The translations under genes were made by a program, and so were the position numbers. A stretch of 64,000 nucleotides of DNA from Leidyana gryllorum EB-2025a (taxonomy: Eukaryota; Protista; Apicomplexa). The DNA is taken from contig JBLWGC010000033.1 in NCBI GenBank assembly GCA_048772705.1, forward strand, positions 62,001 to 126,000, read 5' to 3'. Every line of letters starts with the position of its first letter. The first letter of the stretch is position 1. The notes below the pieces were generated by a model, which did not search any database, was not told the DNA's origin, and worked only from the letters and a program-made list of their open reading frames with translations. Positions 15,393 through 62,159 of the stretch are shown here, one piece after another.

Positions 15393-18300
15393 ATGCGGGT
15401 ACCCAGTCTCAATGCCATTGAAGGGAAGGACCACTCCCGAGCACTTTTGAGTGCCTTTGTCACTGCGGTCGCTTCAAACCCCCAGCCTGCGATCGGGCTG
15501 GGGGCTGACCAGACTGCACAAGAGGAGGAGTCCAACAGAACGACAGTTACCTCACAGCCCGGGAGGCCGAGTTATTCACCGTTTGATCTGTTCCGGCCGA
15601 GAATGGACGTCATCCGTGGATCAGATGACGAAGTATTGGTGCACGTTTCAGCCCCAACGGGTGAAAAATGGACGCTATCTCTCACTTTACCCAAACTGGG
15701 CGCCACTTGCCAGAAATTAGACGAAATCTCACCATCTTATCGGCAGATTTACGATACACTCGTCGAGTTGTACAAAACGGGGAGTATCACCCGCACACAG
15801 GAGGCACAGATCACCCGCAGCATCCCAATACTGCGCAAATGTGACGTTTTTGCTGACCTCTTTGTCACCTCCGACGCCAAGCCGATCCAGGATGGAGGAG
15901 ACGCCGCTCAGCAGACAGACCTGCCGGAAGAGACGGCTGCAGTGCCTCCAGCGGCAGCAGCAGCGGCAGAAGAGACAGCCGCCGCCGCAGCCGTCCCCAC
16001 AGCTGTCAAGGGCTCTCGGTCGGGGAAAGGGGGCTTTGGGGCTCGAAAAGTGCTGAAGGGGGCAGCAGCAGCAGCGGATGAGAATGTTTGCACCAAAAGA
16101 GGGGCGAAGAAGAAGGGAGGTAAGGCGACGGGTGATCTCCACATATCGCAAGTGTGGAAGGACATGGTGCTGAGGCACGCCAGGACTCGAGGGGATCGCA
16201 AGGAGAAAGGCGGGACGAAAGCGATTATGAATGCGCTCTGGGCCCTCACAGAAGAGACTTTGACAGGCGAGTGTAGTGGTGACCCCACAGCACCGATCGA
16301 GGAGGCGATTGAGGAGGATTTGTCTCGGGCTACAATCAGACGGTTCCAAACGGCTCAGGGCGAGCAAGGGTACATGGTGGCATTCCCAGAGGAGTCAGAA
16401 CAAGAGGCCCGGAGACAGCTCCTTTTCTCATACCTCGAAGGAGAGAAGGAGGATTCTGAGAGAGTGTGGGAGAGTTTATTCGTTCCCCCGGTGGTCAAAG
16501 ATTGTGAGGGGATGTGGAGACACGGCTTTGTGATCAATCAGCAGCTGCATAGCTTACAGTTTTTGCAGTCGCAACACTGTAAAGCGACGGCCTGTATCAG
16601 GAAATGTAACTCTGAGGTCCCGAGACTGAGCGTTGTGCCCGAAGAAGTGTTGAAGATGGTTCACGACAAGTTCAAGTTGGACTCGCGGACGAAAAGCCAA
16701 ATCAGGAAACTGTGCCAACCAATCGCTGAGGGATTCGATGTAAACTTTAACCGGTACATCGCCAGAAGGCTCTATGTGGCAGCGACGAGTTTGAAACGGT
16801 TCGTCGAGATGGTCGAGCAGACGCTCGGGGGTCGCGACTTGGCACTCACAAACCGCTCTCAGCGGCTCGCCGAGAGAGCGAGGGAGGTGGCTGAGGAGTG
16901 TGTGTCGTTCGTGTCCGCCCCGTACAGTGGGTCAGAGTGTACATGGGCTGCTGAGCATTTCCGCGTTCACGCCTCAATGCTTCGCCAGAGTTTCTACGCC
17001 TGGCTGGCAACCTTTGACGCACATTTGTGCCCGGCGAAGTCCCCGGACCACTTCCCCGCGGAGAGCTCTGCTCCGAGGCCGACAGTGACGGAAAAAGTTG
17101 TGCCACCGAAACCGTTGCCGATGACCCCGGAAGTGAATTCGTGGCGGCAGGACAAGGTTCCGACTCCAGAGTCATTTCAGGACCGATACGTCTCTATCGC
17201 CCACAAGGAGGCTGCCCATCTGGCGAGCTTTCGTCAAGCCGCAGCCTGGTTGGCGACGGCTGAAAAGACGCTGGAGGTCAACCATTGGAAAGCGTATCGT
17301 GACAGCTTTGGAAAGAATCGTCGCCACAGCGTTTGGTCGCCACAACAGCTCGCCGAGAGCGAGGATCTGCTGATGGGAAGGGAACTCACCAACATACCGA
17401 GCGTGCAGACGACGAAATGGGGCGAGCTGATTGTGAGATGCGAGCAGAGCCCCGTAGCGAGGGGTTGGGAATACAAGTTCAAGGACGAGCGGCAAAAGGC
17501 CGAAGTTCGTGATGTGGTCGACTTGGCGCTTTTCGTCCAGGATTACGGACTCAAAATCATTGAGTGCTCTCTTCTTATCGGAGCTTATGTTCCGACGCTG
17601 CTCAGCGATATGGGGAGAAAGATCACGAGCCCAAACGAAAGCCATTATGACGATAGGCGTACGCTTGGACTGGTCCTCTCCCATCTGCTCGGCAAAGTCC
17701 TCGCGGATATCACAGCGAAACAGGTCCCACACTCTATTCAGCAGCCGCTCGGCGAGTGCCTGAGGAGGTACACCGACTTGATGGATCATGGGAAGTATCG
17801 AGAGGCGTCAGACACACTGACCGCCTTTGTTCGCACTTACGGGGTGTCCCGTTTCGCTTACTGGCAACTTCGCGCCCAACGGACGTCTCAACAACTCCTG
17901 GCGGCGTTCAAAGCACTGCATGTCTACAAAGATCTCGGGACCTCTGACGATTTCGCGAACTATTTCGATCTTATCCACATCTCCACCTCAATGTCACAGA
18001 TGGACGGCATCTCCGACTATCGCTCCGTCTCAGTACATCCGGCTGCCCAAACTCTCGACATGCGCTCCACCCGGGAACATCTGAACAAATACCTAAAATG
18101 GCTCCGCGTCCCGACCCCGGAATCGAAAGAATTCCACCTCTCTTCGTTGATGGTCGGGGTGGACGACACTACCGGATGTGAGACTCTGGCAACGTCCACT
18201 GACATCAAAGAGAGTGCACCAGTGTCGTCGGCCGCCGAAGTACCTTCAGCCGTCAAGTCAGTGTCTGTTGGCACAGCAGCCACCACCACCAAACGCGGTC

Positions 18301-19241: not shown

Positions 19242-19320
19242 TCATTTAATAATGCGTTTTCACAACTCTTTATACCCATAACCAGTCCCCTCAACGGCCC
19301 GAAATTTTCGCGTCGGAAAG

Positions 19321-22300
19321 ATGCGGATACCTCAATGCCGAGTCCAGAAGGTCACTTCCATCAGCAAATTACTCAGTGTCTTCTTGGGGGGGCTCACCAC
19401 GATACCGTACTCGAACGAACTTACCACCAAAGACATTGTCGCTCAAGTATGCCAAACGGGACAGGCGGTGGTTTGCAGGTCCAAGGAGGTCTCTTTGGAC
19501 CAACCACCCGATGGAGTGTTGTTCGTTGCCATTCCAACAGGCAGTCAGGTCCAACTTCTCGCCTGCGAGATGAAAGCACTGACTAATCAGCTGTTGTTCA
19601 CAAAGTGCGCTGATGACGAACTCGAGGCCCTACACGCCATCTGCCGCGTGTGGAAGGGCGAACCAGCCGATGGAGACATTCAAAGTCTTCAGCATCCGAA
19701 CCTCCGCAACGCGCACATACATCGGTGCGTCATCGATCCAGTGGCCGCCCCACCCGCCTGGTGCCTCGGATTCGGCAACAGAGTTGCTGAGGGCCGGATA
19801 CAGGAACTGCTTCGGAGTCCACCAACACCCTCCCCCCCTTCATCACTTCCCTCCAGTCACACAGAGACCCAATTCTGGGACAATCGATCGCCTTCACTGA
19901 GTTTGGGCACCAGTCCAAGCAGCTCCCCGCCCACCACTGCTCTCCGCGTTTCGCCCATCAGTCCTCTCCAACGCTCCCCCTCGCCCACGCCGGACCACTC
20001 TCAGAATATGAGTTTTGCAGAGCGAGTTTGGTGGGCCCAGGCTCGTCTTGCCCGTAAGGCGGCGAGCGAAATACCCCCAGTCTCACCCCAGTCACCATCG
20101 GACTCTTTCTCGCTCTTCTCCTCAGCAGGCCAAGTCCCCTCGGTCGGCCCGAGCCAGCCTCAACAGATGCCTCTCCAGCAGCCGCAGGCTACCCCCCGAC
20201 GACTGGTTCAAACACCGATCCGGCCGGTCGAGACGCTTCAGTTGACCGCTCCGCCGGCCGGGAGGGTTCCGGTGACCGCTCCGCCGGTCGAGACGCTTCA
20301 GGTGACCGCTCCGCCGGTCGAGACGCTTCAGGTGACCGCTCCGCCGGTCGAGACGCTTCAGGTGACCGCTCCGCCGGCCGGGAGGGTTCCGGTGACCGCT
20401 CCGCCGGCCGGGAGGGTTCAGGTGACCGCTCCGCCGGCCGGGAGGGTTCAGGTGACCGCTCCGCCGCGCCCCGCCTGGTCGAGGGTTTGGCCTCCCACCG
20501 AGCAGTTAAGCAGCAGTGCCACTCGGTCACATGCTGCAGTACTCGCCGCTGCGGTCTCGAGAAACAGCACACCCGCCACCAACACCGCCACCGTCACCAC
20601 CAAGTCTGAGACAGAGCAGTCAGGGGGCATCAGCACCAAAGCTTCTTCTGACGGTGCGAGATGTCTGGACAAAGCTCCAAAAGAGTTACCGTCAGCGTCG
20701 AGACAGCCGCGGAGGGGCGTGAGACATCGACGGAATTCGGCCCGCTCGCGCCCGGAGGTCTCAGGGAGCGAAGTTTTGGCACCAAAGGGAAGAACGGGTG
20801 GCAAAGAAGTGTTGGTGAGTGTTGATGGAGGCGTCAAGCTCAGTGGCGGCGAGAGGTCCGCTAAAACACGAGGTGCCCCAAAGGGCGTCAGACGGAAGGG
20901 GGGGAAACAGAAGCCGAAAGCTGTGACCGATGGTGACTGGGAAGATGCCCTATGGGCGCAAGAGCAGTTGTTACCTCAACAGAACACAACAGAGTCAGTC
21001 GTCGACCCGTTGCGACGGGTGATTGAGGAGGCGTCAGAGGAAACTGCTGCTGTGTCGGCAGTGGAAGGAGAGAAACCGCCACCTCAGCAGCAGCCGCAGC
21101 CGTCAAAGGAGGAGGTGGATGAGATCGAAGAGTTGGAGGAGAAACCCACCAGACGGCGCAAACGGAAAGCGCGGAAGAGCGCAAACAGACGGTCGATGGT
21201 TAACGATGACGAAGAAGAAGAAGAAGTGGAGAAGATTGTTGTTGCGGACGTTTTGGGGGCACCGCTTATTGAAAGTGAGGAAAGGGACGACCCATTGCCT
21301 GAGTGCCGGACAATGGTATTGCAACCCATCAAGAAGTGGTTGAAACAAGTGAGAAATGACGTGAGCGGGTGGGAGAACGGCAACTTTGGTCTCTCGCTCG
21401 CACTCGACGCAGAGTATGCGCTCCACGGAGCTATAGCCAGCAACTTGGACTCGCTGTACACTCGGCTAATGCAAACAGACAAGATAGAGGGTGCGGAGGC
21501 TTACCCGACCCGCTTCACAGCGTTGGTGGGAGAGAACCAAGTTGAGGCACTGCGTCTGGTGGTTTGGCTATACCAAGCGCCTCCGGACTTCCCAGAGCAT
21601 ATCAACCTCGTCGAGCGAGCGGAACGAGCGAAGCGTCTTGTGGAACCAAAACTCTATTGGCTATGGACATTGGGCCAAGCTTTTGGGTCAAATCCACATC
21701 ACAAACCTGCCACATGGGACAGCGCAATTTGCAAGGGGGGAGACAAACTATGCCTCGCTCTGCACCCGCATTTGGTATTGCACGAAGTGGGACAGATCGC
21801 AAAGGAGGTGGGCGATAAGTCTTTGATTCGGGACATTGACATTCTGAACCTGATCAAGGAGGAGGATGAACCCGAACCAAGTTACTGGCGCACTATGGCT
21901 CGACGGGCGTACATTTACGCCAGGGGGGTCTGGAGAGTGATGGAGCTGGTGCGAGCCAGCAACCCAGACAATGCAACAGCTACGCAGACGTTCACTCAAA
22001 CCGGTCTCAAGTACTGCTCAGAGATCATGGCACTCTCCCGAAAGTTGGCCCAGACAAACCCAGACGGAAATGTTCGTCGTCCAGCCGAGGTGTTGCGACG
22101 AATTCGAGCTTCTGTGGTCTGTGTCCAGACATTCATCAAGACTCTGGTTGTCCACCTGGATGACTTTCTCTTGCGAGAAGGCGCCCCCAAATCCGCCGCC
22201 GCTGCCGGTAAAGTCGCAGGAAAGGAGCCCAAGAAGCAAAACGTCGGTGCCTTGCCGGCAACGTACGCTCCCGAAGTCGCCAAGGCTTGGTACGCGACCA

Positions 22301-24354: not shown

Positions 24355-24476
24355 TTGCAACGTTAAGCTCAGTGTCCAATTCAGTCAGACTTTTTCCGCT
24401 GCCTCGCTAGGCACAGAAACTCACTCATTGCACTCAAAAAGAGTATCATTCAGCCTGCGTTGAACAAGTGATGGAT

Positions 24477-24624: not shown

Positions 24625-25178
24625 CAGCACCAGCAGAGCGAGGGAAACACATTCTTATTTCGTATGCCAAACATCCACCATATGAAAGAAATCAAATCTG
24701 ATTTTTTAGGCGGTTCCTGCCCAAAAACGATTAAAAAAGAGACGTTGTGTCTATTCCTGATCGACACATTCGGCACTCAACACGTTAGCGTCTCAACGAT
24801 ACGAAGCGCGTGCAGTGGTAGGATGGTCGCACCCGACTCCGCAAGCACGACGAACAGCTTCAATCGTGATCTCCTCTATTCTGATTGACAACCCCAAACG
24901 CAGTGACGATACTCAAGTCGCCCGCAGATATGCGTAGGGAGGCTGGGCAACCCTAAGTACTTTACAAAACATTATTAGCATTGCCTGCCGATGACCGGCG
25001 AACGACGCGCACAACAAACACACGTTTTCAAGAAGAAAGTCAACTACGCATGAGCCAAAAACCGGGCAAATGACCAGTGGAGAAGTTCCGCACCAACAAC
25101 AGTTGTCAAACCTCTCGCCATTCTGCACCCGTCTCCATATGCACACACGCACACGTAGCTCTCTGTACGTCAACGCCC

Positions 25179-28100
25179 CTATACCAGCAAACTTTGGATA
25201 CTTTGAGAGTCAAAAGCGTGATGAAGCATCACTTTCCATTGACTCAATGTTGCGCTAATTGTGGCCCATCCATGTAGCCACGGGTTGTCCTCCTCACATA
25301 CTTCCGTGTCCGAAGTTTCATCGCCACTCATAAGACTCCACAGTTCTGAGCCCAGCATTGCCTGCACCAGAACGTGGGCTATGCGTTGACTAAGACTCAT
25401 GATGTGGCCGTCTGATACACTCGTCACGCGATCAATGGTATCCTCCAGTGCCTTCTCTAGCTCTACTATACGCTTCAGCAGCTCCTCATGCTCCATCAAG
25501 GTCGAGCGTAACTGATCTTCAAACACTTGAAGGGAAGGCGGAGGCGCTCGGGTGGGTGGGGGACCCAACTCTCCTACCAAACTGGCCAAACGCCTACGAA
25601 CCTTATTCTCTGACTTGAGACGCTTCGAATTCTCCAACGTCGTACTCCGCTTCCGACGGAACCATCCGCTGCCGCTCGCCGATGGGGCACGCAGAGGATT
25701 CTCCTGACGCAATATCGTCCGAGCCAAGGATTGCAGCAGATCATAGTCCTCTTGAGATATGCTCGAAGGCTGGCTGGAACCCAATAGCGGCACTGGCACA
25801 TCAGACACTCGCTCTCGCTTTTTCTTCGTCAAGTGACGAGTTTCCATCACCCACGCATCAAACATTGGCCTCAGCAGAAGGTGATGAACAAAGTAGTTCC
25901 ATTGCTGATGGGAACGTCTGTTCGATCCCCCCAACACTTCTGTAGCTCCCGACATCGGACTCGGCTGCGTCTCTTCCACATCTTGCGGCTTGGGTTTGGG
26001 CACCACCCCATCGCCGTCGGCTCGAGGACTCTCGCTCGTCGCCCCAGCTGTCGGAAACCCGCCCCCGGGCCACTCACTTCCCTCCTCAGATCGGAAGGCT
26101 GACAGTGGCATGTGGGGACTGAGCAGTCCGCCACGCTCCCCTGCTGCGGACCGTGCTTGAGATGCGATCTGAGAAGAAGATAATCCTCGGGAGCTGGAGG
26201 CGCACCGCGACGACGTCAGGAATGTGTTCACGTCAGGGGTCCGGAATGGTGAGCTGGAAGTGGTGCTCGAGCTCCAGGTACGTAAACGATGCGTTATACT
26301 GAACGGATTGGCCGTCAGCAAGGGAGAAGGTACTGCAGAATCGCTTCTGACCTCTTCGTCCAACTGCACCCCTCGACGAAGTACCGTCAAACTGCTGGTC
26401 TGACTTTGTATCGGAGTATGCGCCCCAAGATCATTCCGAAACGCACTCGGCTCACTGCCACGACGGCGTTTAGCAGGGTACGGGAAAACTCGACTGCGTA
26501 CATCGTCACGACAGCTCAACACCAGTTTGCTCATTTTCCCTTCATCCAACTTCCACAAATGGAACAGACGACATATCAGACGTATGGGCCATGTCACCCG
26601 GGTCTGCCATATCAGCATCATTGCTACAGCACTCAATGAATCCAGACTTCGTAAATGATTCTTCTCCGTTTCCAGATAATTCTCGTGCTCGAATTTACGA
26701 GCTTCAATCTTCTCAAGTAACTCACGGGTTTCCACCGCCATTATAGGGATCTGATTGCTCAACTTGGCTCTACAGATTGGATCTAGAAGTGTGAGAGTTT
26801 TGCGGATACCGATCAATGTCTCGCGAAGGTCGGAAAAGCCGACATCCCGAGCACTGCGCAACGTTTGACACTTCGATGTCACCAATGAAAGGAAGATTGG
26901 CAATGGAATCCCTCTGAAAGTGAAAGAAATTGACACCCACGTGTGTGCTATGCTCAACACTTACTGGGCGTCCTCGAAAGCTACGAGCTCACTCGCGCAC
27001 TCAACGAGGTTCGCAGCCCAGTTCGGCGGCCGAACGATAGTTAGTCTTCTCACACTGGTGCTTGAGGAATGCCAGTAGTAAGGCAAATGATATCGCAGAT
27101 GTGTTGTCAAGACAAAGTTGAAGTCTTCAGCATACATGGCTCTAGAACATGTATTCATACGACGGATGTCAAATACAGAAGTCCAGGGCGAGTAGTGCTC
27201 CGTGATGGTTGTATTGATACGTTGGAAATGCCATACTTTCCCGACATTGTTCCCATGTGATGGGCTGCAACCTCCGTGTCCAGATCCGCCGGTCCCGTTG
27301 TCGGTGGTTGCGGAGGTAAAGCGACTGAAAATAGGTGGACTATAAGGCTCAAACAATTTGAATATGCGATGAGGTACGTATTGTGCTGGTTGGGGGCACG
27401 CTTCAGTTGAGAATATCAGTGATCCTCCATCCCACTCGGTGACGTCGAAGTGCCACGCAGGGACAATAGGCTCGATCAAGGGGTCGACATCATTGGCTGA
27501 GAAGGTGTTACCGCGCATTCCACCTGTGGAGGAGAGGCCCAGTCCTCGGCTGACATTGCTGTTGCAGCTTCGGTGCAGTATCGGAGCGGTTTCGACTGAT
27601 CCAAGATCTACGCCGTCTTCCAAGTTGGGGCTGTCCAGGAGATCGGCCATTCGCAGCAAATCCGGACTCATGCAGTGCGAAGGGCTGTTGCACAGATCAC
27701 CAGAATCGCACACTTCAAGATGTGTGGGGCTTTTGCGCTTGCGGCCCTCCAAATCAGTATTGGTCAACACGGATACGCAAAGTAGACTCAACTGGTGATA
27801 GTATCCCCATCGTCTATCGCTCTCGGGATTCAGCTGAGGTAATCCAAGATTACTCGACTGCTGGACATAGATATGATTCGTGGCTGTCACACCACTTCCA
27901 GCGTGTGTCAGACTCCCATGACCGCTGGCAGACGGCGTGGTGGCGCCGGCTAGTACAGCTTCTTGTTGGTTGGCGGGTACCTTTCTGAGGGCGACAATGA
28001 AGGGAACCGGAGAGTCGAGTATAGCGGAGCCCAGCGACGAAGGGAGAATTGGAATGAAAGCATGTGGCCAGCGACAAGGAGCCGTCGCTGTGTGCAACAG

Positions 28101-29751: not shown

Positions 29752-29842
29752 AAACTATATCATGGAGCTCCAAACATCGACCTCTTAAGGTTCAAGCCAT
29801 AAATCCAACATCACCGATCAAAATCATCACATATCATGCACT

Positions 29843-31924: not shown

Positions 31925-31933
31925 TCGCCAAGA

Positions 31934-38451: not shown

Positions 38452-39168
38452 GATAAATATGCGGTGAATAGATTTTTCGTTGAAATTTTTCTACTGCTTA
38501 CTGTCGGCCAGTCGTACTCAACAGTCAGCTACAAGTGTTACTATGCCGTCTGCAGGACATCGCCCCCATCTAAGAGAGTTTTGGTCAATTGGAGGGGATC
38601 TGCTGATTGCCGGTGCCCAAACATCGGGCGTATGCCGATCAAACTCAACTCCGTCTCGTCCTGCTAGGTTCAGGAGGTCGAAACTTCGGTGACTTCAATG
38701 GTTGATAGCCCACTTGACCGATAATACAGGCAGCAGCGATGGATACTCGATTTCTCGAGAGGCGGTCCAGCCTGCGGCCGACTTCAATTCCAAATCGCAC
38801 CTTGAGCACAGATGGAAGGCATCCTCACAGTACACAGTCATCTGTAAAGTCCTTCATAGCCGCATCCTTGTCTGCGGGCGAACTCATGTCGCCCTGATCT
38901 AATCACTCCTTATCTGTAGGCATCACTGCTTCCTTCTTAATTCCTTTTTGACCATCGTTGATAGTAGGTAGATTCACGTGCAAAGGTCGTACAGCACACA
39001 CGTGTCTGTCTGTGTCTCCCTTCCTGATCCTGAGGAGATATTCTGTAATTAAGCATGACAGGTATGCCGATATCAAGAGCGTACTCTTATAGATCACGGT
39101 GTCATATTAGCTTCCGTGCTCTTCTGATGAACGATTTTGGCCTCGAACTGGTGGTTCCTCCTGGTGTT

Positions 39169-43044: not shown

Positions 43045-43205
43045 TCCAACACACGATAGTCCCAATTTTTTTGCCCATTTGTCGGCGGAGGCAAATGGAT
43101 TCGATGAACAAAAATCACGAGGGAATCCCTTCAATGGAGAGGAATACTCCTCATTAATGCCAATGATGAATGCTCATACAACACATCACACAACCTCCTA
43201 TCGCT

Positions 43206-48129: not shown

Positions 48130-48209
48130 TCGTGTCAAAAAAAATTTGTTTCACCTCGCATTCAGCTCAGCTGAAGCTGTACACTCTAAACTCAGTGAAC
48201 ACCCTAAAC

Positions 48210-50623
48210 TCACCGAAGCACACCATTTTCAACCCCACGTTCTGGTGAGGATTCAAGGGCAGTCGGCGGAGAAGCTGTGCAGTCACCGCTATCCTCTGAG
48301 CCACTGGGAAGCTCAACGACGTGCATACCAGTCGGAAGAGGCTGCTGCTGCTCTACTTCGTCTTCAAGTGATATTCTAAAATCTTTTTCTGTGGGCCAAT
48401 CAATGCTCGCTCCGCAGTCCTCCAGCAGGTGCACGAGATGGAGAATGGCGACATCTCTCCGACATTTTCCCTCGATAGACGATAAGTAAATACCTCCGGT
48501 GCGGTCTTCGATGATGGCGTAACGAGCTTTGCCCCGGAAATGACTGTAAGCGACTTGCGTCCTCCATCTGCCACACGGCACAGCAGCCTCGATTTATCGT
48601 AGAAGCAGAGGCCGCGGTTGAATAATCGTCGCAAGAATGGCTCGAAATCCGCTCCTTCCGCCTCCTGCAGCAAAGTGTACTGCCGCTTGGACAGCTCTTC
48701 TCCCTGCGCGTTGATGAAGGAAGCATTCACGACGCCGCCATTGATGGAGTGCTCGACTCGAGGATAAAGAGGAACTCGCAATCTGCTCAGGATGAGATCT
48801 GTGCGCTCTCTCGGCGGCTCACAAGGTTTGAGATTGTGGCGTTTCCCATAGTGCGCCTGATTCCAACCCTTGATCTCGTACAGCAGATACGCCGCGTTCG
48901 AACCGATACTAATCGATCTAAGGGTGTCTTCCCACGCAGCAACTGCGGGTTGATGAAACTAGATAGAACAGTCTCCAAGGGACGCTTGGCAACTATATCT
49001 TCAGCCGTCTCTTCGGATGAGCTCAGAACAAAGTCCACCGAGATCATCTTGTTTCCATCGGGTGAGACAACCCCGAGCAGAATAGCTTCCTGTGGAGTGC
49101 CTGGGGGGTATTCTAAGGCGTACAGAAGGATTAGTCCCCCAATCCGTTCGCTCGATCGAACCATCATGGCCTTACTCCCATTTCGCCATTCCTGCCCGAA
49201 AAGTTGGAATATTGGGCCCGGCAGCTTGAGGTGCGCTGGAGGTTTCTGGAAAATCCACGCATCCCTTCCAACGAGCATCAGTTCCGCTCCTTTCTCGACA
49301 AAAACGTTCAGATTTCTCCAGCCTTTCATGATGGACTCAACTTTGGAATTGCCACCCCAAGAATCCGATATTTGGCGGGCGACGCTGTCCGATCCCATTC
49401 CGATTCGCGACAGGAAGTTCTCGAGGAGCCCTGTGCCATTTTCATCAGCTGTTGGCGGCGCACGGTAGAGTACTCCTTCGTCTTCGATCTCTTCCTGACC
49501 GACTGAAGGGTCTTCGCCTCGGAGAGGCAGCTCAAGATCGTTCTGCACTTTCCGTTGATCCCACAAGATCCACTGTGGTTCGGCGTAGAGCGACACTTCG
49601 CCGCGAGTGCGTCTCAGCTTGGATTGGTCCAGCGTCTTCTCCTCCTCTGAAGCCCCCCTCATCACTTCAGCAATCTCAGATTCCGTCGAGTGGACGGTGA
49701 GACCGAAGGTCGGATAGCATCGAGCGGCTCCTTCGGAGATACTCCCATCAGAAAGAGTGGCTTATGGACATCCTTAGACAGAAATAATGCAGCCTGCACT
49801 CCCCCCGAAGCCTCAGCTTTTGAACACGTCTTGATGTGGTAAAAATCGGTCAGACGGGCTATCGCTGATACGAAGACAGTGGCACTTCTGTCCAAAGTTG
49901 AAGAATCCTCTTCCGGTTGTTGTGTACTCTCAGCGCAGCTCGAGAAGTAATCCCAGGGAGAATCATTGTTCGCTCTGATCCGTGTTGGGCACGCTGCTCT
50001 CATAGCCTTAGCCGTTGTGTAGCTCTTAAGAAGGCGCCTGTTTTCCGTCAGCCGAAGCTCTTGGACCGACCCGTCGTCGTAGGTCACAAAGAAGCTCTCG
50101 TGATGCATTCCCAGAGCAGCAATTCGAGGTCGATGCAATAACTAGTTGAAGACCCCAGCGTTACTCGAGATGAAAGCATCATTCATCGGCAGAATGTTCG
50201 GCCAAAAACTCATCTCGATGAATTTACACCCATTATTGTCAACAAATCCCTCAAGTTGTCTCAATGTCCCCGATTTCTCGGATTCAGGGCGCTGAGAAAG
50301 AAGAGCACAATAATCAGAGACTGAGGGCCAAGTTGAAGCAACAATCGACATTGTCCTGAAGCCCATTCCTTTTGCAACTTGGAAGGCAACGCGAGACCGG
50401 GAGGGGGTTTGAGCAAGAACGCTTTGTCATTCTGAAATGAGAAGTACTCTTCTCCCCACGCAGGATAAAGACGCGACTTCCGTTGTTGCTGATCCTAAGA
50501 CGGGCAGCTGGGCGGTGAAATGCTTACTGGACGCCCTTGGCCCAGGACAGCGATGCCGCAGGTGAGGAAGGTCTCTGTGTTGCCGAGGGTCCCACTACCA
50601 CATCCCACATAGGGCACCTTCAT
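48210..50623 (-). pseudogene. Array B member 5, disrupted paralogue
   Basis: Starts MKVPYVGCGSGTLGNTETFLTCGIAVLGQG at 50623, with TAG at 50495-50497 and another in-frame TAG at 50142-50144. Family motifs continue across frame changes near 49720 (YPTFGL), 48910 and 48535 (ILHLVHLLEDCGASIDW). Confidence 0.82.
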
Positions 50624-51073: not shown

Positions 51074-53503
51074 TCACCTGGCGAGCAATTCAAGCAAGTC
51101 ATGGGCCCCATTACTTGCACCACTGCGACACGCTTTGACAATTCCGCGCATTGTCGGGGGAGGTGGTGCCTTGGGGATGACGGACCAAACAGTAGAAGCA
51201 TCGCTTTCAGCGCGACTAGTAGAGCCGCTTTCTTCAGCTTCGGTCTCAAGTGCAGTTGGGGCTCTCGAGTGCTCTTCTGCAAGTAGTAAATGAGTCGATT
51301 CCTTCTTCAATCTAATCTTCAAACGCAATTTATCATTCCACTTGGCCTCCAGCCCAGCTGCTTGAAACGCATTAATGATGTGCAGCATGTTGCCTTGAAC
51401 GCGGGTCTTTTTGTATGCAGGCAATAGCTTGAATCCTGTGTGCCCGTCCCATCTAATGCGATAGAGGTCCATAGTCGTGTGTTTCTCAGACGCTCTGCTC
51501 ACAACAAGCGTGTGGAAGCGGGGTCGAGGGTATTGTTTATCATAGTAGCTGGTGAACCTGAGATGTTGATGATCTGAGAAGTACACCCCGCGACTATGTA
51601 GTCGTCTCAACATTTCCAGAGCCCAGTCCCTCTGTTTCTTGCCGTCAGCCTCAAGGTGATAAACTCGAGTGCTGGGTTTCTTCGACTCGTCTTTGATGTT
51701 GACACGGACAGTAGTGTCTGACACTAATCGCAGTTCTACCTCGGGTTCGAACTTTGGAGGAAATGAAAATCGTTGTGGTAGAGCGCCATTCCGCACTGTG
51801 CGTACAGTCTTCCCGTTGCCTACTCGCACAACTCCACGGGCTGTCTTGGAGTAAGCGCACCCGAACCCAATCACGATCTCGTCGATGACATCGGGCTGAG
51901 TGTTTCGAGATGCGAGGCGCTCAGCAATCAACCCCTGAACGGCCTCGCGGACCGAAGCCGCTTGCGGGATGTGGTTGCGGATGTGTGTTGTGTAGGTGAG
52001 TTCGCAGATGCGATTGAGTGTTGGGCAGAAGAGTCCGACAAGACGTCCTCGTTCGTTACCGTCGTATGGTGGGCGCAGGGCGTACACAGGGATTCCGCCC
52101 GCGAATACTCCGTCCCCGCCGACAACTGCAATCTCCCCGAGTGAATTGTTTTCTTCTCTACGGAAGAGTTGGGAGAGATTGGGGGCGATGTGGACGCGAC
52201 ACTCTTGGGTTGGGAGGATACGCCAACGATTATTTCCGACCAGCGAGCAGTCAAAATTCTTCTCGGCCAAGGCTCGAATATTGGAGAGGCCGGCAACGAA
52301 TCTGGTGATTAGGGGGCTTGAGTTGGTGTCTGTCCACGACTTTACGAGATCGAAGGGAAAAGATGGAAGAGGGGTGGGGGTGTGCGTTATGAATGTGAGT
52401 TCATCCCAGAACGGCCAGACTGGGGTGCTGGCTGATGAGGTGATTGTGGGTCGCGCTGTATTTGCCACCTCTTCGTGACTTGGCAATTCCGACCGCGCCC
52501 GCTCGTATGCGGTGCGAATTGCGGCAGGAGTCGAGTTCTCAGTGAGCCCCATGGTGGGATATATTTGAGGCTCGTTGTCTTCGAAAGCCAACAGGATGAG
52601 GGGTAAATCATCCTTACCGAGAACCAAATAGTGATCGTAGATGCAACTTTGGCCTCGCTTGGCGTTGGCTCCCGGAATAATCTTCAAAGTGGGGGGCAGG
52701 AAGTTCAGGACGCCGGCGTCAAAGATCTTTTGAATGATGGCTTCTGAGCGCTGACGGGAATAGTGGGGCGTAACACGGAAATGGTACTGGACGAGGCCCC
52801 GAATCGGGTGGCAGAAACGCAGCTTATAGAGATCGTCTCTGACGGCCACAGGTGAATTGAGTGTAGTCGAGTGCACCAGTTTGGTCAATAAGACATCCGG
52901 ATCGCACACAGCCTGCATTTCCCAGTCGTGGTCGTGATACACATACTTTCGGGGACTGTCGGGTTCGCCCTCCAACCACAGATACACGCCATGGAACGAC
53001 AATCCGATTTTGGTCACGTCACTATGTGTTGTGAGGAAGTGCTTGATGGATCCAGCCCACTCCCTCAGTACTTGTGCCAGCGCTCGGTCACAGTAAGACT
53101 CATCAAAAAATACCTCCACCACTCGAGTCCCATCAGGAGTCAACAGCCCTTCGAGGGTTGTTGGTTTGCCTGGACCCCTTGGGACTGAATACAACGCCCA
53201 CAAGTCTGGGTGACCGTCGATTTGTTTTGCCGAGAGTGCGCACCCATAACTGCCCCACTTCTCTCCAAAAGTGGTCGCAAGCTGCCCACAAAGAGTGACA
53301 TCCGGAGGAGGCCTGATGACTTCGGCGAAGCCATCAACTGGACTAACGACTCTCGGATCCTCAAAAACTATCACGTCCCTCGGACGTGCTAGGCCAAAGG
53401 GAGAGGCACCCAGTGGGGAGGACCCCAAGGACACGGCTACGGCACAGAGATGGAAAATATCCTCCTCGTGCTCCAGGCATTTATCTACTCGTGGAACCCT
53501 CAT
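51074..53503 (-). CDS. Array B member 6 (809 aa), MRVP leader
   Basis: Motifs LEGLLTPDGTRVVEV, IYPTMGL, WPFWDEL, SLVGNNRW, GGIPVYA and MLHIINAFQAAGLEAKW. Confidence 0.88.
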   Translation of the reverse strand: MRVPRVDKCLEHEEDIFHLCAVAVSLGSSPLGASPFGLARPRDVIVFEDPRVVSPVDGFAEVIRPPPDVTLCGQLATTFGEKWGSYGCALSAKQIDGHPDLWALYSVPRGPGKPTTLEGLLTPDGTRVVEVFFDESYCDRALAQVLREWAGSIKHFLTTHSDVTKIGLSFHGVYLWLEGEPDSPRKYVYHDHDWEMQAVCDPDVLLTKLVHSTTLNSPVAVRDDLYKLRFCHPIRGLVQYHFRVTPHYSRQRSEAIIQKIFDAGVLNFLPPTLKIIPGANAKRGQSCIYDHYLVLGKDDLPLILLAFEDNEPQIYPTMGLTENSTPAAIRTAYERARSELPSHEEVANTARPTITSSASTPVWPFWDELTFITHTPTPLPSFPFDLVKSWTDTNSSPLITRFVAGLSNIRALAEKNFDCSLVGNNRWRILPTQECRVHIAPNLSQLFRREENNSLGEIAVVGGDGVFAGGIPVYALRPPYDGNERGRLVGLFCPTLNRICELTYTTHIRNHIPQAASVREAVQGLIAERLASRNTQPDVIDEIVIGFGCAYSKTARGVVRVGNGKTVRTVRNGALPQRFSFPPKFEPEVELRLVSDTTVRVNIKDESKKPSTRVYHLEADGKKQRDWALEMLRRLHSRGVYFSDHQHLRFTSYYDKQYPRPRFHTLVVSRASEKHTTMDLYRIRWDGHTGFKLLPAYKKTRVQGNMLHIINAFQAAGLEAKWNDKLRLKIRLKKESTHLLLAEEHSRAPTALETEAEESGSTSRAESDASTVWSVIPKAPPPPTMRGIVKACRSGASNGAHDLLELLAR

Positions 53504-53766
53504 GGTGGCAAGACAGAAATGTAAATTTTGGTACGTCTTTGTCGGATAGAGACCTCAGGTTCAGAGAGGATACAGCTCTCCCAATTGTGCAGCCACGGAG
53601 CAACAACATCAACTGTCCGATCCACAATGCCTCGAAACGAGGGAGCTGTCGTGCTGCCACTAATTGACGAGAAAGAGATTGCCCGTTCGCGTAGTAAAAA
53701 AAGTTGTGGCACTCGCTTTGAAGGTTAGATAGAACTCATTGTGTCCAAAACTCTGCTGCATCTCAT

Positions 53767-56655
53767 TCATACACTGGTTTCGGGTATCACCGAGACTAAG
53801 AGATCCGTCAATGCTTGATCCAGAATGTCAATGGGAGAAATCGGCTGGGCACTCCATTCCCCCCCGGTGGTCGGCTGCACACTCCGTTCCCCCCCGGTGG
53901 TCGGCTGCACACTCCGTTCCCCCCCGGTGGTCGGCTGCACACTCCGTTCCCCCCCGGTGGTCGGCTGCACACTCCGTTCCCCCCCGGTGGTCGGCTGCAC
54001 ACTCCGTTCCCCCCCGGTGGTCGGCTGCGCACTCCATTCCCCCCCGGTGGTCGGCTGCGCAGTCCGTTCCCCCCCGGTGGTCGGCTGCGCAGTCCATTCC
54101 CCCCCGGTGGTCGGCTGCGCAGTCCATTCCCCCCCGGTGGTCGGCTGCACACTCCATTCCCCCCCGGTGGTCGTGGGTTCGTCTTCTCGTTTGGGGGCGA
54201 CCCGCACCATCTTGGAGGGGTCAAAGGTGATATCCCTTTCAATGAGTGAATGCGTCTTCTTTTCTGGGAAAATGATCATCTTGTCTGGTTTTGGCCATCT
54301 CAGGACGAACCCTGAACGCTCCATGGCATTCACCAGATATAAGAATTCAGCCTCACAGGGGCTGTTGTCGTGAATGGGGTGTAGGTGAAGTGTGCCTTTG
54401 GGCGTCGAAATAAGTCGGTAGAGAGCACCAAACCTCCCATCGTGCACAGTGAAACAGTCCGAGTCGTCGACAGCAGAGTATTTGAGATGAGCGTCAGGTT
54501 TTAGAAGCAACCCTCGAGAATTGATTGCTTTCAACAGCTTCCCGACCCTCAACATATCAGCCGTCTGTTCAACATCTATTCGGTAGCGGCGTATGCTCGT
54601 GTTGCCTCCAGAGTCAACAATGTCTAGTTGGACCTTTTTGGTGCTTTCATCGACCAGGCCGTCCCAGAAAATGTTATTGAGATCAGGAATCACTGGGGCT
54701 GTCATCTGGCGAGGTCTGTACTCCACCTCCATAGGTTTCACAACGGCCGAGTTGCATTTCCAATACCGGCCCTCCGTGTTTCTGCCATACACGCTATCAT
54801 CCTCTACATAGATCTTGCACAAAGAGTTCCCCATCTTTTTACGACCGAATTTCAACATCTCCGTGACGCACTTCTCCATCTGACGCGTGTTACCCGGCTG
54901 AGTGTCCGGATATCCCACGGCAATGACGCGTTTGCACTTGAGGTCCAGAAGACCAACGAGCCGAATTATTTGAGACGTCTCCGCCGGCTCCGCGACAGTG
55001 TACAGCGGTATACAACCGGCATATCTGTAGTGTGGATGGACGATCAGACTGGTATTGAGGTTCCTCAGCGCTCCCTCATTCATCAAAGTTGGGAGAATCC
55101 CACTGATGTCTCCGTCCAGGCGCCATCTGTCTGTTCCCACCGCCGATGTCTGTATGCCCAACCGTGAGAGCGTGAGCAGATTAGCGTTCTTTATCTCGAA
55201 AAAATACTTCAAGTAGTGGGCCTTTCTACAGATCGACTCGAATAGGCTGCTACTCGGAGGTGTCGAGTGGCCGAACGTAACCGGTACACGACCTTCAATT
55301 GCCAAACTGTCCCAGGAAGGCCAGTGAGGGCGCTCCGAGGTGTATATGAAGGCCCGCTTCTTCCTGAGAACCTCCGGATCTTGTGACGAGACCTCTTTGA
55401 GGGCACGGGTGTAAGCAGCACCTACTTGAGCTGGACCGGCTTTGGAGTCCAGTCCCAAGGTGGGATAAAAATTGACGCCACTCTCCTCAAAGGCGATCAG
55501 AATCAGAGGGGATTTGGTCGCGGACTTCACCAAGCAGTAGTTGACTGAACTTTCATGTTGCTTGGGGCCGAACACGAAAGAGCAGTCGGGCTTGAAGAGC
55601 TCCAAAACTCTGTAGCGCAGCAGTAACTTGGCGAGCTCCTCCGCGTCCTGATCTCCACTCTCCAGATTGAATCCGAACGATTTATCCAACCAGCGGCCCC
55701 CGTTCAGTTGCACAATCCATTGACAAGCGTCGTCATGGTACTCGAGTGTTTCCGGGCGAGCTTCCGACATCCTCAACTGCTTGTGGCACTCAATATCAAA
55801 CACATCGTTGTCCACCATCTCAACATGCCAAGCCTTCGAGTTGCAAGGCGTGTAGCTCAGCGTATACGGCAGGATTTGCGCTAATTTCTCCAACCGGTCT
55901 CTTCTCGCTTCTTCCCAAGCCCACATCGCTTCCTTCACACTCAGAGCCTTTTTTCTCACCTTCTTCGTCTTTGATGTTTCTGGCGGCGCTTGTGTCTCGG
56001 CCGTCTCCACCAGCGCTGGGGTCTCCAGCGTCTCCACCGGCGCTTGTGTCTCGGCCCTCTCCACCGGCGCTGGTGTCTCCAGCGTCTCCACCGGCGCTTG
56101 TGCCTCCAGCGTCCCGTCCCTGGGGGCCTTCCTGACGAAGCATTTGGTGCTCGTAATACCAACAGCCAGTGTCCGTTTGTCGTTCAGAACGGAAGTGAGT
56201 TTCGGTCCATACAGCTCGATCCAAGACATGAGCACTTTATCTTTCTCCAACTCATCCGAAACAAAGACCGGAATGACTCGTCTACCATCAGGTGTAGTCA
56301 GGCCTTCCAGCAGTGTGTCGCCCGCACCGTTCTTAAGCTCTGAATAAACTGCGTAAACACCCTTCGTCCACGGATTGAGATGCACCTTCAGTCTTCGATG
56401 TTGATCTTCCCAATTCGGTCCAAAAGAGTGAAGTCTGCCGCATAACGCTACACCGGTTGGAGGCTCGCGAAAATAGCCTTGGCCGTCCGCAGTCAACAAC
56501 AATGATTTGCCAGGGAAGGTGGGCCCAAACAGCCCATCTGCGTAACTCTCACTGCCAGTTTGGGAAGCTGTGAGCGTAACTACCTGCGCAAGACAAAGGG
56601 CTAAGTCAGAGGTGTTTGAGTGTTCCACCAATTGCTGAACCCGCGGTGCTTTCAT
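53767..56655 (-). CDS. Array B member 7 (962 aa), MKAP leader, Thr-rich repeat tail ending ETSV
   Basis: Motifs LEGLTTPDGRRVIPV, FYPTLGL, WPSWDSL, AVGTDRW, YAGCIPLY and FLYLVNAMERSGFVLRW. Confidence 0.88.
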   Translation of the reverse strand: MKAPRVQQLVEHSNTSDLALCLAQVVTLTASQTGSESYADGLFGPTFPGKSLLLTADGQGYFREPPTGVALCGRLHSFGPNWEDQHRRLKVHLNPWTKGVYAVYSELKNGAGDTLLEGLTTPDGRRVIPVFVSDELEKDKVLMSWIELYGPKLTSVLNDKRTLAVGITSTKCFVRKAPRDGTLEAQAPVETLETPAPVERAETQAPVETLETPALVETAETQAPPETSKTKKVRKKALSVKEAMWAWEEARRDRLEKLAQILPYTLSYTPCNSKAWHVEMVDNDVFDIECHKQLRMSEARPETLEYHDDACQWIVQLNGGRWLDKSFGFNLESGDQDAEELAKLLLRYRVLELFKPDCSFVFGPKQHESSVNYCLVKSATKSPLILIAFEESGVNFYPTLGLDSKAGPAQVGAAYTRALKEVSSQDPEVLRKKRAFIYTSERPHWPSWDSLAIEGRVPVTFGHSTPPSSSLFESICRKAHYLKYFFEIKNANLLTLSRLGIQTSAVGTDRWRLDGDISGILPTLMNEGALRNLNTSLIVHPHYRYAGCIPLYTVAEPAETSQIIRLVGLLDLKCKRVIAVGYPDTQPGNTRQMEKCVTEMLKFGRKKMGNSLCKIYVEDDSVYGRNTEGRYWKCNSAVVKPMEVEYRPRQMTAPVIPDLNNIFWDGLVDESTKKVQLDIVDSGGNTSIRRYRIDVEQTADMLRVGKLLKAINSRGLLLKPDAHLKYSAVDDSDCFTVHDGRFGALYRLISTPKGTLHLHPIHDNSPCEAEFLYLVNAMERSGFVLRWPKPDKMIIFPEKKTHSLIERDITFDPSKMVRVAPKREDEPTTTGGEWSVQPTTGGEWTAQPTTGGEWTAQPTTGGERTAQPTTGGEWSAQPTTGGERSVQPTTGGERSVQPTTGGERSVQPTTGGERSVQPTTGGERSVQPTTGGEWSAQPISPIDILDQALTDLLVSVIPETSV
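53841..54170 (-). repeat. Coding 30-bp tandem repeat, 11 copies (QPTTGGE[RW][ST][VA])
   Basis: Plus-strand unit actccgttcccccccggtggtcggctgcac. Confidence 0.95.
55985..56110 (-). repeat. Coding 27-bp (9-aa) degenerate repeat, about 5 copies (APVETLETP / APVERAETQ)
   Basis: AQAPVETLETPAPVERAETQAPVETLETPALVETAETQAPPET is inserted in the first core copy of member 7. Confidence 0.8.
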
Positions 56656-56922
56656 GATTCAACGCTGAGAAATACCCAAAGTGAGCCCAAAAATATTCTT
56701 GAGAACTGGTCGCGTGGATGTCGGTTTGGCCCACCGCACAGTCTCAAATGTACCCAGTGCCACCAGAAACCCGCCATCGATCACGAGCGTTGATCACAGA
56801 GAGAGACTGTGTAAGCGCAGTCGAAATTTTACTTAACATTGTTCCCACTGCTCTAACCTGAGCATTGATTATTGAGTTCGCTATTGAGTTTGCGATATGG
56901 AAAAAGGCGACACACGCAGCAC

Positions 56923-57675: not shown

Positions 57676-57901
57676 ATTTTTACTTGAGAATTTGATAGCT
57701 GTCAAAACTTCGCGATTGTTGTTTTGGGACCTGTAGTGATGGGGACGAAGCCAAACGACTGGGATGCGGTGTAAATAACGTATTTATACACCAATTGGTT
57801 CGTTGAAATGAACTAAAGCTCACTTGATGAGCTCATTTTATAGTGTAGCAATCGAAATTGATCATTCAACCACTCTACGTGGAACTCTCTCTCTTCCAAT
57901 C

Positions 57902-59707: not shown

Positions 59708-59759
59708 TGGTGAGTACTAATAAAAAGTTTTTGCACTCCAAGAATCATCAAACTCGACA

Positions 59760-62159
59760 TTAGTTGTGGGAGTGACGGAAAAATGATCTTCTCAAAGAGC
59801 TGAAGGAGTTTGTGAGAAACTCGGAACTCCGTCTCACCCCTCCGACGAGTGACTGAGCTGAACCTCCCCAGAAAGGGATGGAGGTGGAGGCTAATGACAT
59901 GGAAGAAACGCTCTCGATGGGACCCAAAGTGATGCCGGATTCAGGAGTCATGGTCACATAGTGCACTTCATTTCCCCGCGATATGTGCAGAGTAGAATCC
60001 TCAGGCCATTTCACGTCGAATCCCATTCGCTGGAGCTCGTTGATCACATAGATCATATCGAGATCTTCGGTTCTCTGTCCTGTCAGAGGGTACAAGTCGA
60101 AGCCAGAGACCGGGTCGAGGCAGACTTTGTACTTTCCCGTTCCCTCCCGGTCCGAAACTCTAATTCCCGGGACTCTGTCATCGTCTATGTATTCTAATTG
60201 GCAGCCATCCGGCAGTACCAATCCTCGACTGTGCAGTCTAACGATTAAGTCTTTGGTCTTGTTATATTCGTCGAGCGTCGACTGCCATCGGTACCGGACA
60301 GTCCGCGGTGTCCCCTTCTCCGTAATTTCGACGGTAATTGTCGGATATGTGACGACGTCAAAGATTATGTTGGGGAGATCATCGACAGCCATACAATGGC
60401 TCTTCAGTACCGCTGAGTGAATACCCATCTCTCGCTTCACCCACGCCAGTTGACTTCTCCCCTCGAATATTCTGAGAGTCCCATCACTCATATGCCCATG
60501 GGCGTACGTCTGGTACAAAACGATCCGATCCAGCTCTGCGCCTGCACCACTCTTTTGTTGTGCCTGTTCCTCGTGTTTGATCAACTTGGAGACAGCGGTC
60601 TCATTAGCTGCGAGGACCGCCGAGTCGGACCGCTCTGCACCTTCCTCAATTTGGATCGCGTACACCCGTTTCGATTTCGGCGCCAACAGACCTACAAGGC
60701 GACAGTCTCTCGAAGTCGCCAGAGGGAATCCCACAGACAAGATGGGAATGCACCCGGCGTAACTCCCCTCGGGGGCACAAACCAACGCGTGGGTAGAGTT
60801 ACTCCACGTATCCTGGTGATACCGCAGGGCCAAAGTCCTCGACAAGGCAACGTCTGCTGGTACTTGTGCGAACGACCAACGATTGTATCCCACAAGGGTC
60901 ATGTCAGCTTTCAGAGAGTGTAATATCCTCAGATTTGGTGCCGCTGCTGCAAACCGTGTGCCGAAAGACTTCCACCCCGCCAGCATATCATAGTTGGGAG
61001 AACTTTTACGCGCTGGTGTCATCAGCTCCTCCCATTGCCGACCGAATAACTGGTCGGCCCAGTCCAAAGTCGACCCATCAGCGGTAGACACTCGCCAACG
61101 AGCGGCTGCCACCTCTGAGGGGCTGTATACACTCAGCAGAGCTTTTGCTCGTGAATAAGCCTCCATCACCTGCTCGGCTGTCGGCCGCAGCGTGCTGTCG
61201 TACATGGGCGGGTAAGATTTTACCACATTGTCTTCAACAGCCAGCAACAACACGGGCTCTCCAGAAGACGACATCACCAGACAACACTTGGCCTCCCCTT
61301 GCACAAAGCTGTCATACACAAAGTCGGCCTCCGGGCCGAACAGATCTGACCATTCAGTCTCTATACGCGCTTTCGCAGTACCCGCTTCGGCCTCACTGGG
61401 CTCGGCTCCTGTATTATTCTCGGTCAGAGCTACGTCCCAAAACTGTTCGGCTGATGCCGTCTCACCTTCTGCCGTCTCGCCTTGTGCTGATGCACATTCA
61501 CGCCCATCGCCGTGAGCTGTGCGCCGTAAACGGTTTGCGCACGCCTCCCGCATCACTCCGATGTCCGCTGGTTCGGCCTTCCATTTCCGTGCCTCGGTGC
61601 AGTATCTCCAAAGAGAACAGCCTCCGCTATGAGACACCGTGTAGATGGCATCCGAACAGATACCCACTCGCAAAACCGAGTTTTCTTCCAATATAGCTTG
61701 GAGAGGGCCGTGACACGCAGCAAACACCGTCTCGGGCGACTCCCGAGCGAGTTCCTCAGACACCCACACGTCCACTGGCTCGCGTCGGCGGGGCGGTATT
61801 AATGTCTCCAACTCACCTCCGAACGCCCTCGTCTCCTCAGTCTCTCGGTACACACCACACGCTCCTCTAATTGTTGGAATTAAGCCCACTAAAACTCTCC
61901 CGTCTTTTGATTGTATGACGTCTCCCAAACCGTTGGGTAATACAACGTCCAATGGCGGCGCAATCAAATAGGCTGCCGTCTTAGTCGGATGGGCCAGAAT
62001 AGAAGGAGGAAATCGTTGTCCAAATACAGACTTTTCCTCCGGAGTGATAACTTCCGACAGTTCGTCAGCCGCCCCAACGCTCAGTGAAGCGGTCACACAC
62101 AGACACAAGTGATCTCGGGCAGACGACTGTCGGTAGGCTGTCACCTGTGGAACTTTCAT
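59760..62159 (-). CDS. Array B member 10 (about 799 aa), MKVP leader
   Basis: First ATG at 62159 (MKVPQVTAYRQSSARDHLCLCVTASLS). Motifs CCLVMSSSGEPVLLLAVE..SYP, TLVGYNRW, YAGCIPI and MIYVINELQRMGFDVKW. Confidence 0.87.
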   Translation of the reverse strand: MKVPQVTAYRQSSARDHLCLCVTASLSVGAADELSEVITPEEKSVFGQRFPPSILAHPTKTAAYLIAPPLDVVLPNGLGDVIQSKDGRVLVGLIPTIRGACGVYRETEETRAFGGELETLIPPRRREPVDVWVSEELARESPETVFAACHGPLQAILEENSVLRVGICSDAIYTVSHSGGCSLWRYCTEARKWKAEPADIGVMREACANRLRRTAHGDGRECASAQGETAEGETASAEQFWDVALTENNTGAEPSEAEAGTAKARIETEWSDLFGPEADFVYDSFVQGEAKCCLVMSSSGEPVLLLAVEDNVVKSYPPMYDSTLRPTAEQVMEAYSRAKALLSVYSPSEVAAARWRVSTADGSTLDWADQLFGRQWEELMTPARKSSPNYDMLAGWKSFGTRFAAAAPNLRILHSLKADMTLVGYNRWSFAQVPADVALSRTLALRYHQDTWSNSTHALVCAPEGSYAGCIPILSVGFPLATSRDCRLVGLLAPKSKRVYAIQIEEGAERSDSAVLAANETAVSKLIKHEEQAQQKSGAGAELDRIVLYQTYAHGHMSDGTLRIFEGRSQLAWVKREMGIHSAVLKSHCMAVDDLPNIIFDVVTYPTITVEITEKGTPRTVRYRWQSTLDEYNKTKDLIVRLHSRGLVLPDGCQLEYIDDDRVPGIRVSDREGTGKYKVCLDPVSGFDLYPLTGQRTEDLDMIYVINELQRMGFDVKWPEDSTLHISRGNEVHYVTMTPESGITLGPIESVSSMSLASTSIPFWGGSAQSLVGGVRRSSEFLTNSFSSLRRSFFRHSHN

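Follow-up and report, generated by a model that had tools for sequence, protein, structure and literature searches.

To our knowledge, gregarines are the least studied large branch of the Apicomplexa, and we know of no account of how they sort secreted or host-interface proteins. Better-described export signals fall into several designs. Motifs of the PEXEL and RxLR kind lie downstream of the signal-peptide cleavage site and remain on the processed protein, while in Tat signals, which operate in bacteria, plastids and some mitochondria and not at the eukaryotic endoplasmic reticulum (ER), a motif in the n-region selects the export route. In Plasmodium it is established that signal sequences can be recessed behind hydrophilic spacers of up to 50 residues (PMC1431722). 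At position 2 of ER signal sequences the most enriched residues are Lys and Arg, which keep the N-terminus unprocessed and unacetylated, and an unprocessed N-terminus counts most for weakly hydrophobic signals that are independent of the signal recognition particle (PMC3104963). Here we describe an N-terminal leader carried by orphan proteins in a window of 64,000 nucleotides from Leidyana gryllorum EB-2025a (contig C33, positions 62001–126000; genome assembly of 15.5 Mb in 237 contigs) and in genes elsewhere in the same genome. On sequence grounds the leader is a real, selected N-terminal module, common to protein bodies without detectable homology to one another, and it most likely marks these orphan proteins for entry into the secretory pathway.

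Results

The leader is a bipartite N-terminal stretch of some 30–36 residues. A cap, M-[KR]-[AVT]-P-[RHQYC]-[VFLI], precedes 8–18 polar residues, often acidic (Glu, Asp) or His-containing, and these are followed by a moderately hydrophobic core of 10–12 residues with small residues at its end (SLG, VLG, AVAS, VLA); downstream of the core, a disordered spacer rich in Ser, Thr, Gly and Pro extends to about residue 60. A cap, a polar spacer and a short hydrophobic stretch ending in small residues were what the original prediction, made from the letters of the window, had described, and the layout holds, the core being usual and in some members weak. Position 2 was Lys or Arg in 23/24 leaders and Gln in one, position 5 (free in the search pattern used below) was Arg, His, Cys, Gln or Tyr in 21/24, and about half of the leaders had Cys in the core.

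Direct translation reproduced the N-termini predicted at all 12 coordinates in the window, and every one of these starts is the first in-frame ATG downstream of a stop (Table 1); two have degenerate caps (MQTPRL at 43044 and MKLAPT at 59707). It had also been stated that no housekeeping gene in the window starts this way; the remaining open reading frames (ORFs) of at least 200 amino acids (aa) do start differently. One further match to the DNA pattern lies in the window, at 7601–7617 on the minus strand, internal to an ORF. The hydrophobic core is a feature of leaders rather than of the proteins at large: when hydrophobicity was taken as the best 10-residue Kyte-Doolittle mean within residues 7–40, a value of at least 1.9 was reached by 68% of 22 leaders and by 2.5% of 471 windows taken from the bodies (p = 7e-13, Mann-Whitney test). 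Onset of the hydrophobic patch fell at residues 15–25, and the patch recurred in leader genes outside the window.

Grouping by BLASTP and by a profile built from nine members placed all of the minus-strand genes at 34.8–62.2 kb in one very divergent family (family B, 18–25% identity). The original prediction had recognised two arrays, A and B. Array B is indeed one family, of wider membership than proposed, since it takes in not only the shortened genes g57675 and g59707 but also g38451, g43044, a pseudogene at 48.2–50.6 kb and a distant member, beginning MRPPCQ, at the end of the window. In the pseudogene the leader ORF ends after codon 42 and the body consists of pieces in other frames that match the family hidden Markov model (HMM); the first ATG of the distant member falls 21 nt outside the window, at window coordinate 64021. 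Array A, by contrast, is not a paralogue family, because g12333, g15393 and g19321 show no detectable similarity to one another by BLAST or HMM, nor do g15393 and g19321 to family B, and g12333 is without the cap. This last gene (12333–15266, plus strand), a 977-aa orphan, starts MALRHH; its N-terminus is basic and residues 19–28 form a hydrophobic patch, so that the layout of the leader is there without its motif.

Within families the cap is more conserved than the protein that it precedes. Cap identity was 0.55 in family B and 0.65 in family C (a second tandem family, described below), compared with 0.20 and 0.38 for the respective bodies, and in family B the cap ranked fourth most conserved of 715 six-column windows. 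All four Pro codons (CCA, CCC, CCG and CCT) are in use at codon 4, which argues that selection acts on the peptide and not on the DNA. Comparison of families B and C by hhalign returned a single alignment, of residues 1–37 with residues 1–37 (E = 0.045), and BLAST and HMM searches between leader-bearing groups gave no cross-matches. The claim that unrelated bodies share the leader thus stands in so far as hhalign, BLAST and HMM see no body homology, and needs amending in that array A, one of the two supposed families, is not a family.

The leader extends well beyond the window. A DNA pattern for M-[KR]-[VA]-P-x-hydrophobic had 75 matches in the genome; all 67 outside the array were retrieved and their ORFs checked, and 9/67 proved to be first-ATG starts of ORFs of at least 219 aa, 8 of these exceeding 350 aa. 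Once their loci had been retrieved, these starts resolved into a tandem family (family C, on contig C202; six or more verified members of about 725 aa and 22–92% identity, starting MRAPH[FV], MRTPQF or MKTPYF) and orphan genes on five contigs (Table 1). In total, intronless orphan genes with the leader number at least 24 and fall into at least nine groups unrelated in sequence, many of the genes in tandem arrays, with proteins of 353 to 1677 aa; the earlier count of two families was therefore an understatement. An association with intronless, lineage-specific genes had been anticipated, and the leader is confined to such orphans, none of them in Pfam.

Other searches enlarged this set little. 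With Thr, Ile or Met at position 3, the pattern gave 55 non-repeat candidate matches against 29 for its control; they add three evenly spaced putative starts in the C202 array, at 146742, 149396 and 151984, and a putative in-frame start at C33:206045, reading MRIPAV, for the paralogue on C33. Cap variants with CGN codons for Arg gave few candidates in the genome. A 36-position HMM of the leader, run against its own genome, recovered its 11 training sequences and nothing more, a result that reflects a limit of the prefilter and not absence, because the DNA patterns then found further members. Reversed patterns proved a poor null: a codon-order-shuffled pattern, M-P-[VA]-[KR]-x-hydrophobic, also exceeded its reversed control (42 vs 23). 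As the shuffled pattern gives a similar excess, excess of counts over control is not used here as evidence, and the case for the leader is made from the ORF check and from features in which the search pattern has no part.

On contig C115, two ORF starts separated by 5 kb (20037–20156, minus strand; 25134–25253, plus strand) read MRVP followed directly by a classical hydrophobic signal core (MRVPTLILILLIPIW... and MRVPILVSLFYVSTATG...; translated by eye over 80 nt). If these ORFs are real genes, the MRVP cap is also found on signal peptides that are not recessed. On contig C194 (148353–150239, minus strand) there are 16 copies of ATGAGGACACCACTGTT at spacings of 87–186 nt; they make up either a tandem repeat or part of an internally repetitive gene, without relation to the leader.

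The bodies have almost no relatives. A Pfam scan of 27 proteins found nothing relevant, and no leader protein has a Pfam family. No relatives were found in a word-indexed search of 5.8 billion proteins with g53503, with P0002 (see below) or with an alignment of family C, so that family C had no relative outside this genome in that search. When the family B profile was run as an exhaustive HMM search against 1.84 billion representatives, it returned one true relative, P0002, and one spurious tetratricopeptide-repeat protein. P0002 sits on a 3.3-kb Logan contig (ERR10900112_14974, run ERR10900112), on which the downstream ORF matches family B genes of C33 at 24–29% identity. Its leader has a Met-Arg start, a polar spacer and a Cys-containing core, with Val at the position of Pro4. 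At 919–3349 of that contig the relative is split over two frames (248 aa and at least 541 aa), owing either to a frameshifted gene or to an assembly error. A feature search of the ESM Atlas gave no usable match.

AlphaFold2 models were made for g53503 and for one family C member. Mean confidence, as the predicted local distance difference test (pLDDT), was 60.5 and 56.5 for the two families. In both models residues 1–61 have pLDDT of about 30 and no secondary structure, and folded modules begin at about residue 60; the leader is accordingly not part of the predicted fold in either family. Beyond residues 1–61 both models consist of repeated modules of a helix plus a beta-meander, and this common plan in the predictions could hint at a very distant common ancestry of families B and C. 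No fold was assigned to the bodies, because matches were at noise level: Foldseek comparison with the PDB gave template modelling scores of at most 0.1, and the best Z values in VIA-align were 5.3 and 5.9, under the noise level of that method.

The content of the window is eukaryotic, with a DENN-domain gene and intron-containing neighbours. The positions of its leader genes, and those of the orphan leader genes elsewhere, are collected in Table 1.

Table 1. Leader-bearing genes of the window (window coordinates) and orphan leader genes elsewhere in the genome (contig coordinates). aa, amino acids.
Feature	Position	Strand	N-terminus and remarks
g15393, orphan singleton, 1282 aa	15393..19241	+	Leader 15393-15500: MRVPSL, spacer, core ALLSAFVTAV
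g19321, orphan singleton, 1677 aa	19321..24354	+	Leader 19321-19428: MRIPQC, spacer, core LLSVFLGGLT
g38451, family B, 1211 aa	34816..38451	-	Leader 38344-38451: MKAPCF, core LLLLTATVLG
g43044, family B, 1291 aa	39169..43044	-	Leader 42937-43044, degenerate cap MQTPRL
Family B, 798 aa	43206..45602	-	Leader 45495-45602: MKVPHL, core CLCVVTASLG
Family B, 760 aa	45847..48129	-	Leader 48022-48129: MKVPRL, weak hydrophobic core (1.15)
Family B pseudogene, frameshifted	48213..50623	-	Intact leader MKVPYV, core FLTCGIAVLG
g53503, family B, 809 aa	51074..53503	-	Leader 53396-53503: MRVPRV, core IFHLCAVAVS; AlphaFold2 model made
Family B, 962 aa	53767..56655	-	Leader 56548-56655: MKAPRV, core LALCLAQVVT
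g57675, truncated family B, 250 aa	56923..57675	-	Leader retained, MRAPRI
g59707, family B without N-terminal unit, 601 aa	57902..59707	-	Cap degenerate MKLAPT; hydrophobic core retained
Family B, 799 aa	59760..62159	-	Leader 62052-62159: MKVPQV, core CLCVTASLSV
Distant family B, runs past window end	62480..64000	-	MRPPCQ, spacer, core CALYIAGSVL
Orphan leader gene	C33:204189		MRAPLV; paralogue adjoins
Orphan leader gene	C104:550811		MKAPRV
Orphan leader gene	C202:30279		MKVPCL
Orphan leader gene	C208:246409		MKVPCL
Orphan leader gene	C230:630615		MRAPYF

Two short elements recur upstream of leader genes. An A-run/T-run element, (G)AAA(A)TTT, occurs within −60 to −8 of 9/12 leader genes in the window (13–39 nt upstream of the ATGs at 19321, 38451, 43044, 45602, 48129, 53503, 57675, 59707 and 62159), compared with 2/10 other long-ORF starts, one of these two being g12333 in the same island; the control starts may themselves be wrong, as introns are possible. 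The element may be a core-promoter or initiator element of the leader genes. CCGACA is found 37–65 nt upstream of the ATG in four family B genes (38502–38507, 43080–43085, 53540–53545 and 56719–56724, minus strand), in family C genes and in the leader gene on C208. It was present in 9/23 upstream regions where 0.45 were expected, with 34 observed against 40 expected in the window as a whole, and may be a common cis-element that co-regulates leader genes.

Discussion

Our preferred reading, held tentatively, is that the leader is an ER signal peptide of an extended, recessed kind, the n-region of which carries a conserved cap; we base it on the overlap of the core with genuine signal peptides of this genome and on the literature on position 2 and on recessed signals. 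The comparison is provided by integrin-beta-VWA proteins, the canonical signal peptides of which have core hydrophobicities of 2.94 and 2.15; the median for leader cores is 2.0, overlapping the lower of the two. (These proteins are encoded by two tandem paralogues at C33:196340–199201, minus strand, which share 95% identity across 267 residues and contain a VWA domain of the integrin-beta type, Pfam PF00362, E = 1.5e-9.) The core lies within the first 30–40 residues or so, as the h-region of a signal peptide, 7–15 residues long, should. The n-region is neither short nor consistently positive, running to 14–24 residues with a net charge of −2 to +6. Core ends, judged by eye, read SLG, VLG, AVAS, VLA or GS, patterns that are frequent by chance. 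The description of the leader as ‘not a classical signal peptide’ is thus apt for the n-region and not for the core, the hydrophobicity of which, at 2.0–2.3, matches that of a genuine signal peptide (2.15).

Were the leader to serve as such an extended signal sequence, the weak h-region and the small residues of the c-region would engage the translocon and signal peptidase, and the Met-Lys/Arg start would stay unprocessed and non-acetylatable. Together with the cap that is conserved in the long n-region, this start would supply an element for recognition or orientation and so set out a dedicated class of secretory cargo. The hydrophobic core, the c-like small residues, the Met-Lys/Arg start and the predicted disorder are all in keeping with a secretory signal. 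Entry into the ER, cleavage and a function of the cap, if it has one, are what we infer. Of the earlier suggestion of a secretion tag, the resemblance to the h- and c-regions of secretory signals, the start and the disorder stand, and the tag itself is rated as plausible and unproven.

Several observations weigh against the ER signal reading. Cores are weak, at 1.2–2.3 overall and 1.15–1.6 in a few members, and the family C core contains an invariant Glu (LWPLEV). Net charge of the n-region is mixed, as given above. The bodies are only 1–2% Cys and have no transmembrane segment, a composition that looks nearer to that of cytosolic or host-cytosol proteins than to that of typical apicomplexan surface proteins. 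Conservation is usually lower in a signal peptide than in the mature protein behind it; that the leader is more conserved than the body, the reverse of the usual, suggests that it does more than plain ER targeting. Finally, P0002, the relative outside this genome, keeps the layout without Pro4.

The weak cores, the Glu in a core, the mixed charge, the Cys-poor bodies and the conservation of the leader keep alive another reading, somewhat unlikely in our judgement, in which the leader never enters the ER and is instead a cytosolic module for membrane association or docking, by binding to the pellicle or cortex, by a lipid anchor (S-palmitoylation, for example) or through a dedicated partner. 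A transmembrane span would need a longer and more hydrophobic core, Cys is available in about half of cores, the bodies lack transmembrane segments and have long disordered tails, and conservation above that of the body is expected of a specific binding motif. Yet the other half of the leaders have no Cys, there is no Gly2, so that N-myristoylation cannot prime acylation, and a signal peptide is the better match for the Met-Lys/Arg start and for the small residues that follow the core.

Sharing of the leader might also be a relic of common descent, the groups being paralogues of one ancestral gene with bodies diverged beyond detection, the leader their slowest part and no tag ever recruited. 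The matching plan of the two AlphaFold2 models (disordered over residues 1–61, then repeated helix plus beta-meander modules) is in keeping with this, as are the restriction of the leader to intronless orphans, often in tandem arrays, and the 18–25% identity already spanned by family B alone. We consider it quite unlikely as a full account, given that body similarity is absent by hhalign, BLAST and HMM, that lengths spread from 353 to 1677 aa, and that descent would account for the sharing of the leader and leave unexplained that no other part is as constrained; common descent is in any case compatible with the ER signal reading. Chance resemblance or miscalled start codons we find barely credible. 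The motif is short, and the shuffled pattern also beat its reversed control (42 vs 23), but each start is the first ATG after a stop, family homology begins exactly at the Met, the hydrophobic patch co-occurs with the cap (p = 7e-13), and the cap is among the most conserved blocks.

Host delivery in the PEXEL or RxLR sense, that is, export beyond the parasite into a host cell, was part of the original prediction, which drew an analogy with PEXEL and with RxLR/LFLAK leaders. The leader sits on orphan families that evolve fast and are amplified, with disordered tails and bodies poor in Cys, a profile that is effector-like, and recessed signals go with exported proteins in Plasmodium (PMC1431722). 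The topology of the analogy is wrong, however: those motifs are downstream of the cleavage site, whereas the cap lies upstream of the hydrophobic core and would for that reason be lost with a cleaved signal peptide. Nor did scans for PEXEL, TEXEL, RxLR and KDEL motifs show clear enrichment. Across residues 26–130 of 21 leader proteins, compared with the body rate per 105 aa, RxLx[EQD] matched twice, which is the body background (0.11 per 105 aa), RxLR and LFLAK did not match, and RRL was present in 3/21 proteins, nominally above its rate of 0.04 in the bodies but on too small a count to speak of enrichment. Most gregarines, moreover, are extracellular gut parasites. Host delivery is accordingly unsupported, and we regard it as very unlikely.

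In a bolder reading, and an improbable one, the cap (M-[KR]-[AVT]-P-x-hydrophobic) would serve as a code dedicated to sorting, read ahead of translocation or as it takes place, and would send the orphan class either to the interface with the host or to a secretory compartment peculiar to gregarines. If true, this would be a new apicomplexan export signal placed upstream, not downstream, of the hydrophobic core. The code may be coupled to a shared promoter element, in which case the genes would be co-regulated too.

Some known N-terminal signals can be set aside. N-myristoylation, alone or in dual acylation, is precluded by the residues at position 2, where Gly is absent (Lys or Arg in 23/24, Gln in one), and the spacers contain Asp and Glu (DKCLEHEED and QTEKSD, for example, by inspection), unlike a mitochondrial presequence. 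An inhibitor of apoptosis (IAP)-binding motif requires an exposed N-terminal Ala, and N-terminal methylation requires X-P-K; the Met-Lys/Arg start fits neither. As for the extended signal peptide region (ESPR) of bacteria (Pfam PF13018), no leader protein had a Pfam match at E ≤ 0.01.

A leader defined by sequence and shared by unrelated orphan families would be a handle with which to list a candidate secretome or effector set straight from the genome. It would also be a compact motif that is testable in tractable relatives, with Pro4, Lys/Arg2 and the recessed core as mutational targets. If the cap proves to choose the route, eukaryotes would have in it a counterpart of the bacterial n-region route selectors, Tat and ESPR; if it does not, it would still be of use in annotation, to mark true start codons and the orphan families of this lineage.

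Among described systems, the recessed ER signals of Plasmodium resemble the leader in having a hydrophilic spacer ahead of the hydrophobic signal core, in belonging to lineage-specific amplified families and in being poorly recognised as classical signal peptides. They differ in that their spacers lack a conserved cap at residues 1–6 and PEXEL lies downstream of the core (PMC1431722), whereas the conserved motif of this leader is at the extreme N-terminus, with no clear enrichment of motifs downstream. The classical Met-Lys or Met-Arg signal peptide (PMC3104963) resembles the leader in its second residue, Lys or Arg, in the placing of its hydrophobic core inside the first 30 residues and in the small residues that follow; unlike the classical form, the leader has an n-region of 14–24 rather than 1–5 residues, mixed charge, a conserved cap containing Pro4, and conservation above that of the mature protein. 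By analogy of design, the closer counterparts are bacterial: the ESPR and the n-region motif of Tat signals. The ESPR of autotransporters and two-partner secretion proteins (PMC2805444) is likewise a conserved N-terminal extension before an ordinary n-h-c signal peptide, common to sequence-unrelated passengers and conserved above plain signal peptides; it is of bacterial origin, acts via Sec and YidC and has another sequence, so that the analogy is one of design, without homology. Tat signal peptides, too, have an n-region motif followed by a weakly hydrophobic h-region rich in Gly, Ala, Ser and Thr and by a c-region of small residues; the leader has no RR pair, and here also the likeness is analogy and not homology. 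Taken against these systems, we rate the leader as belonging with N-terminal signal sequences, as a variant of them.

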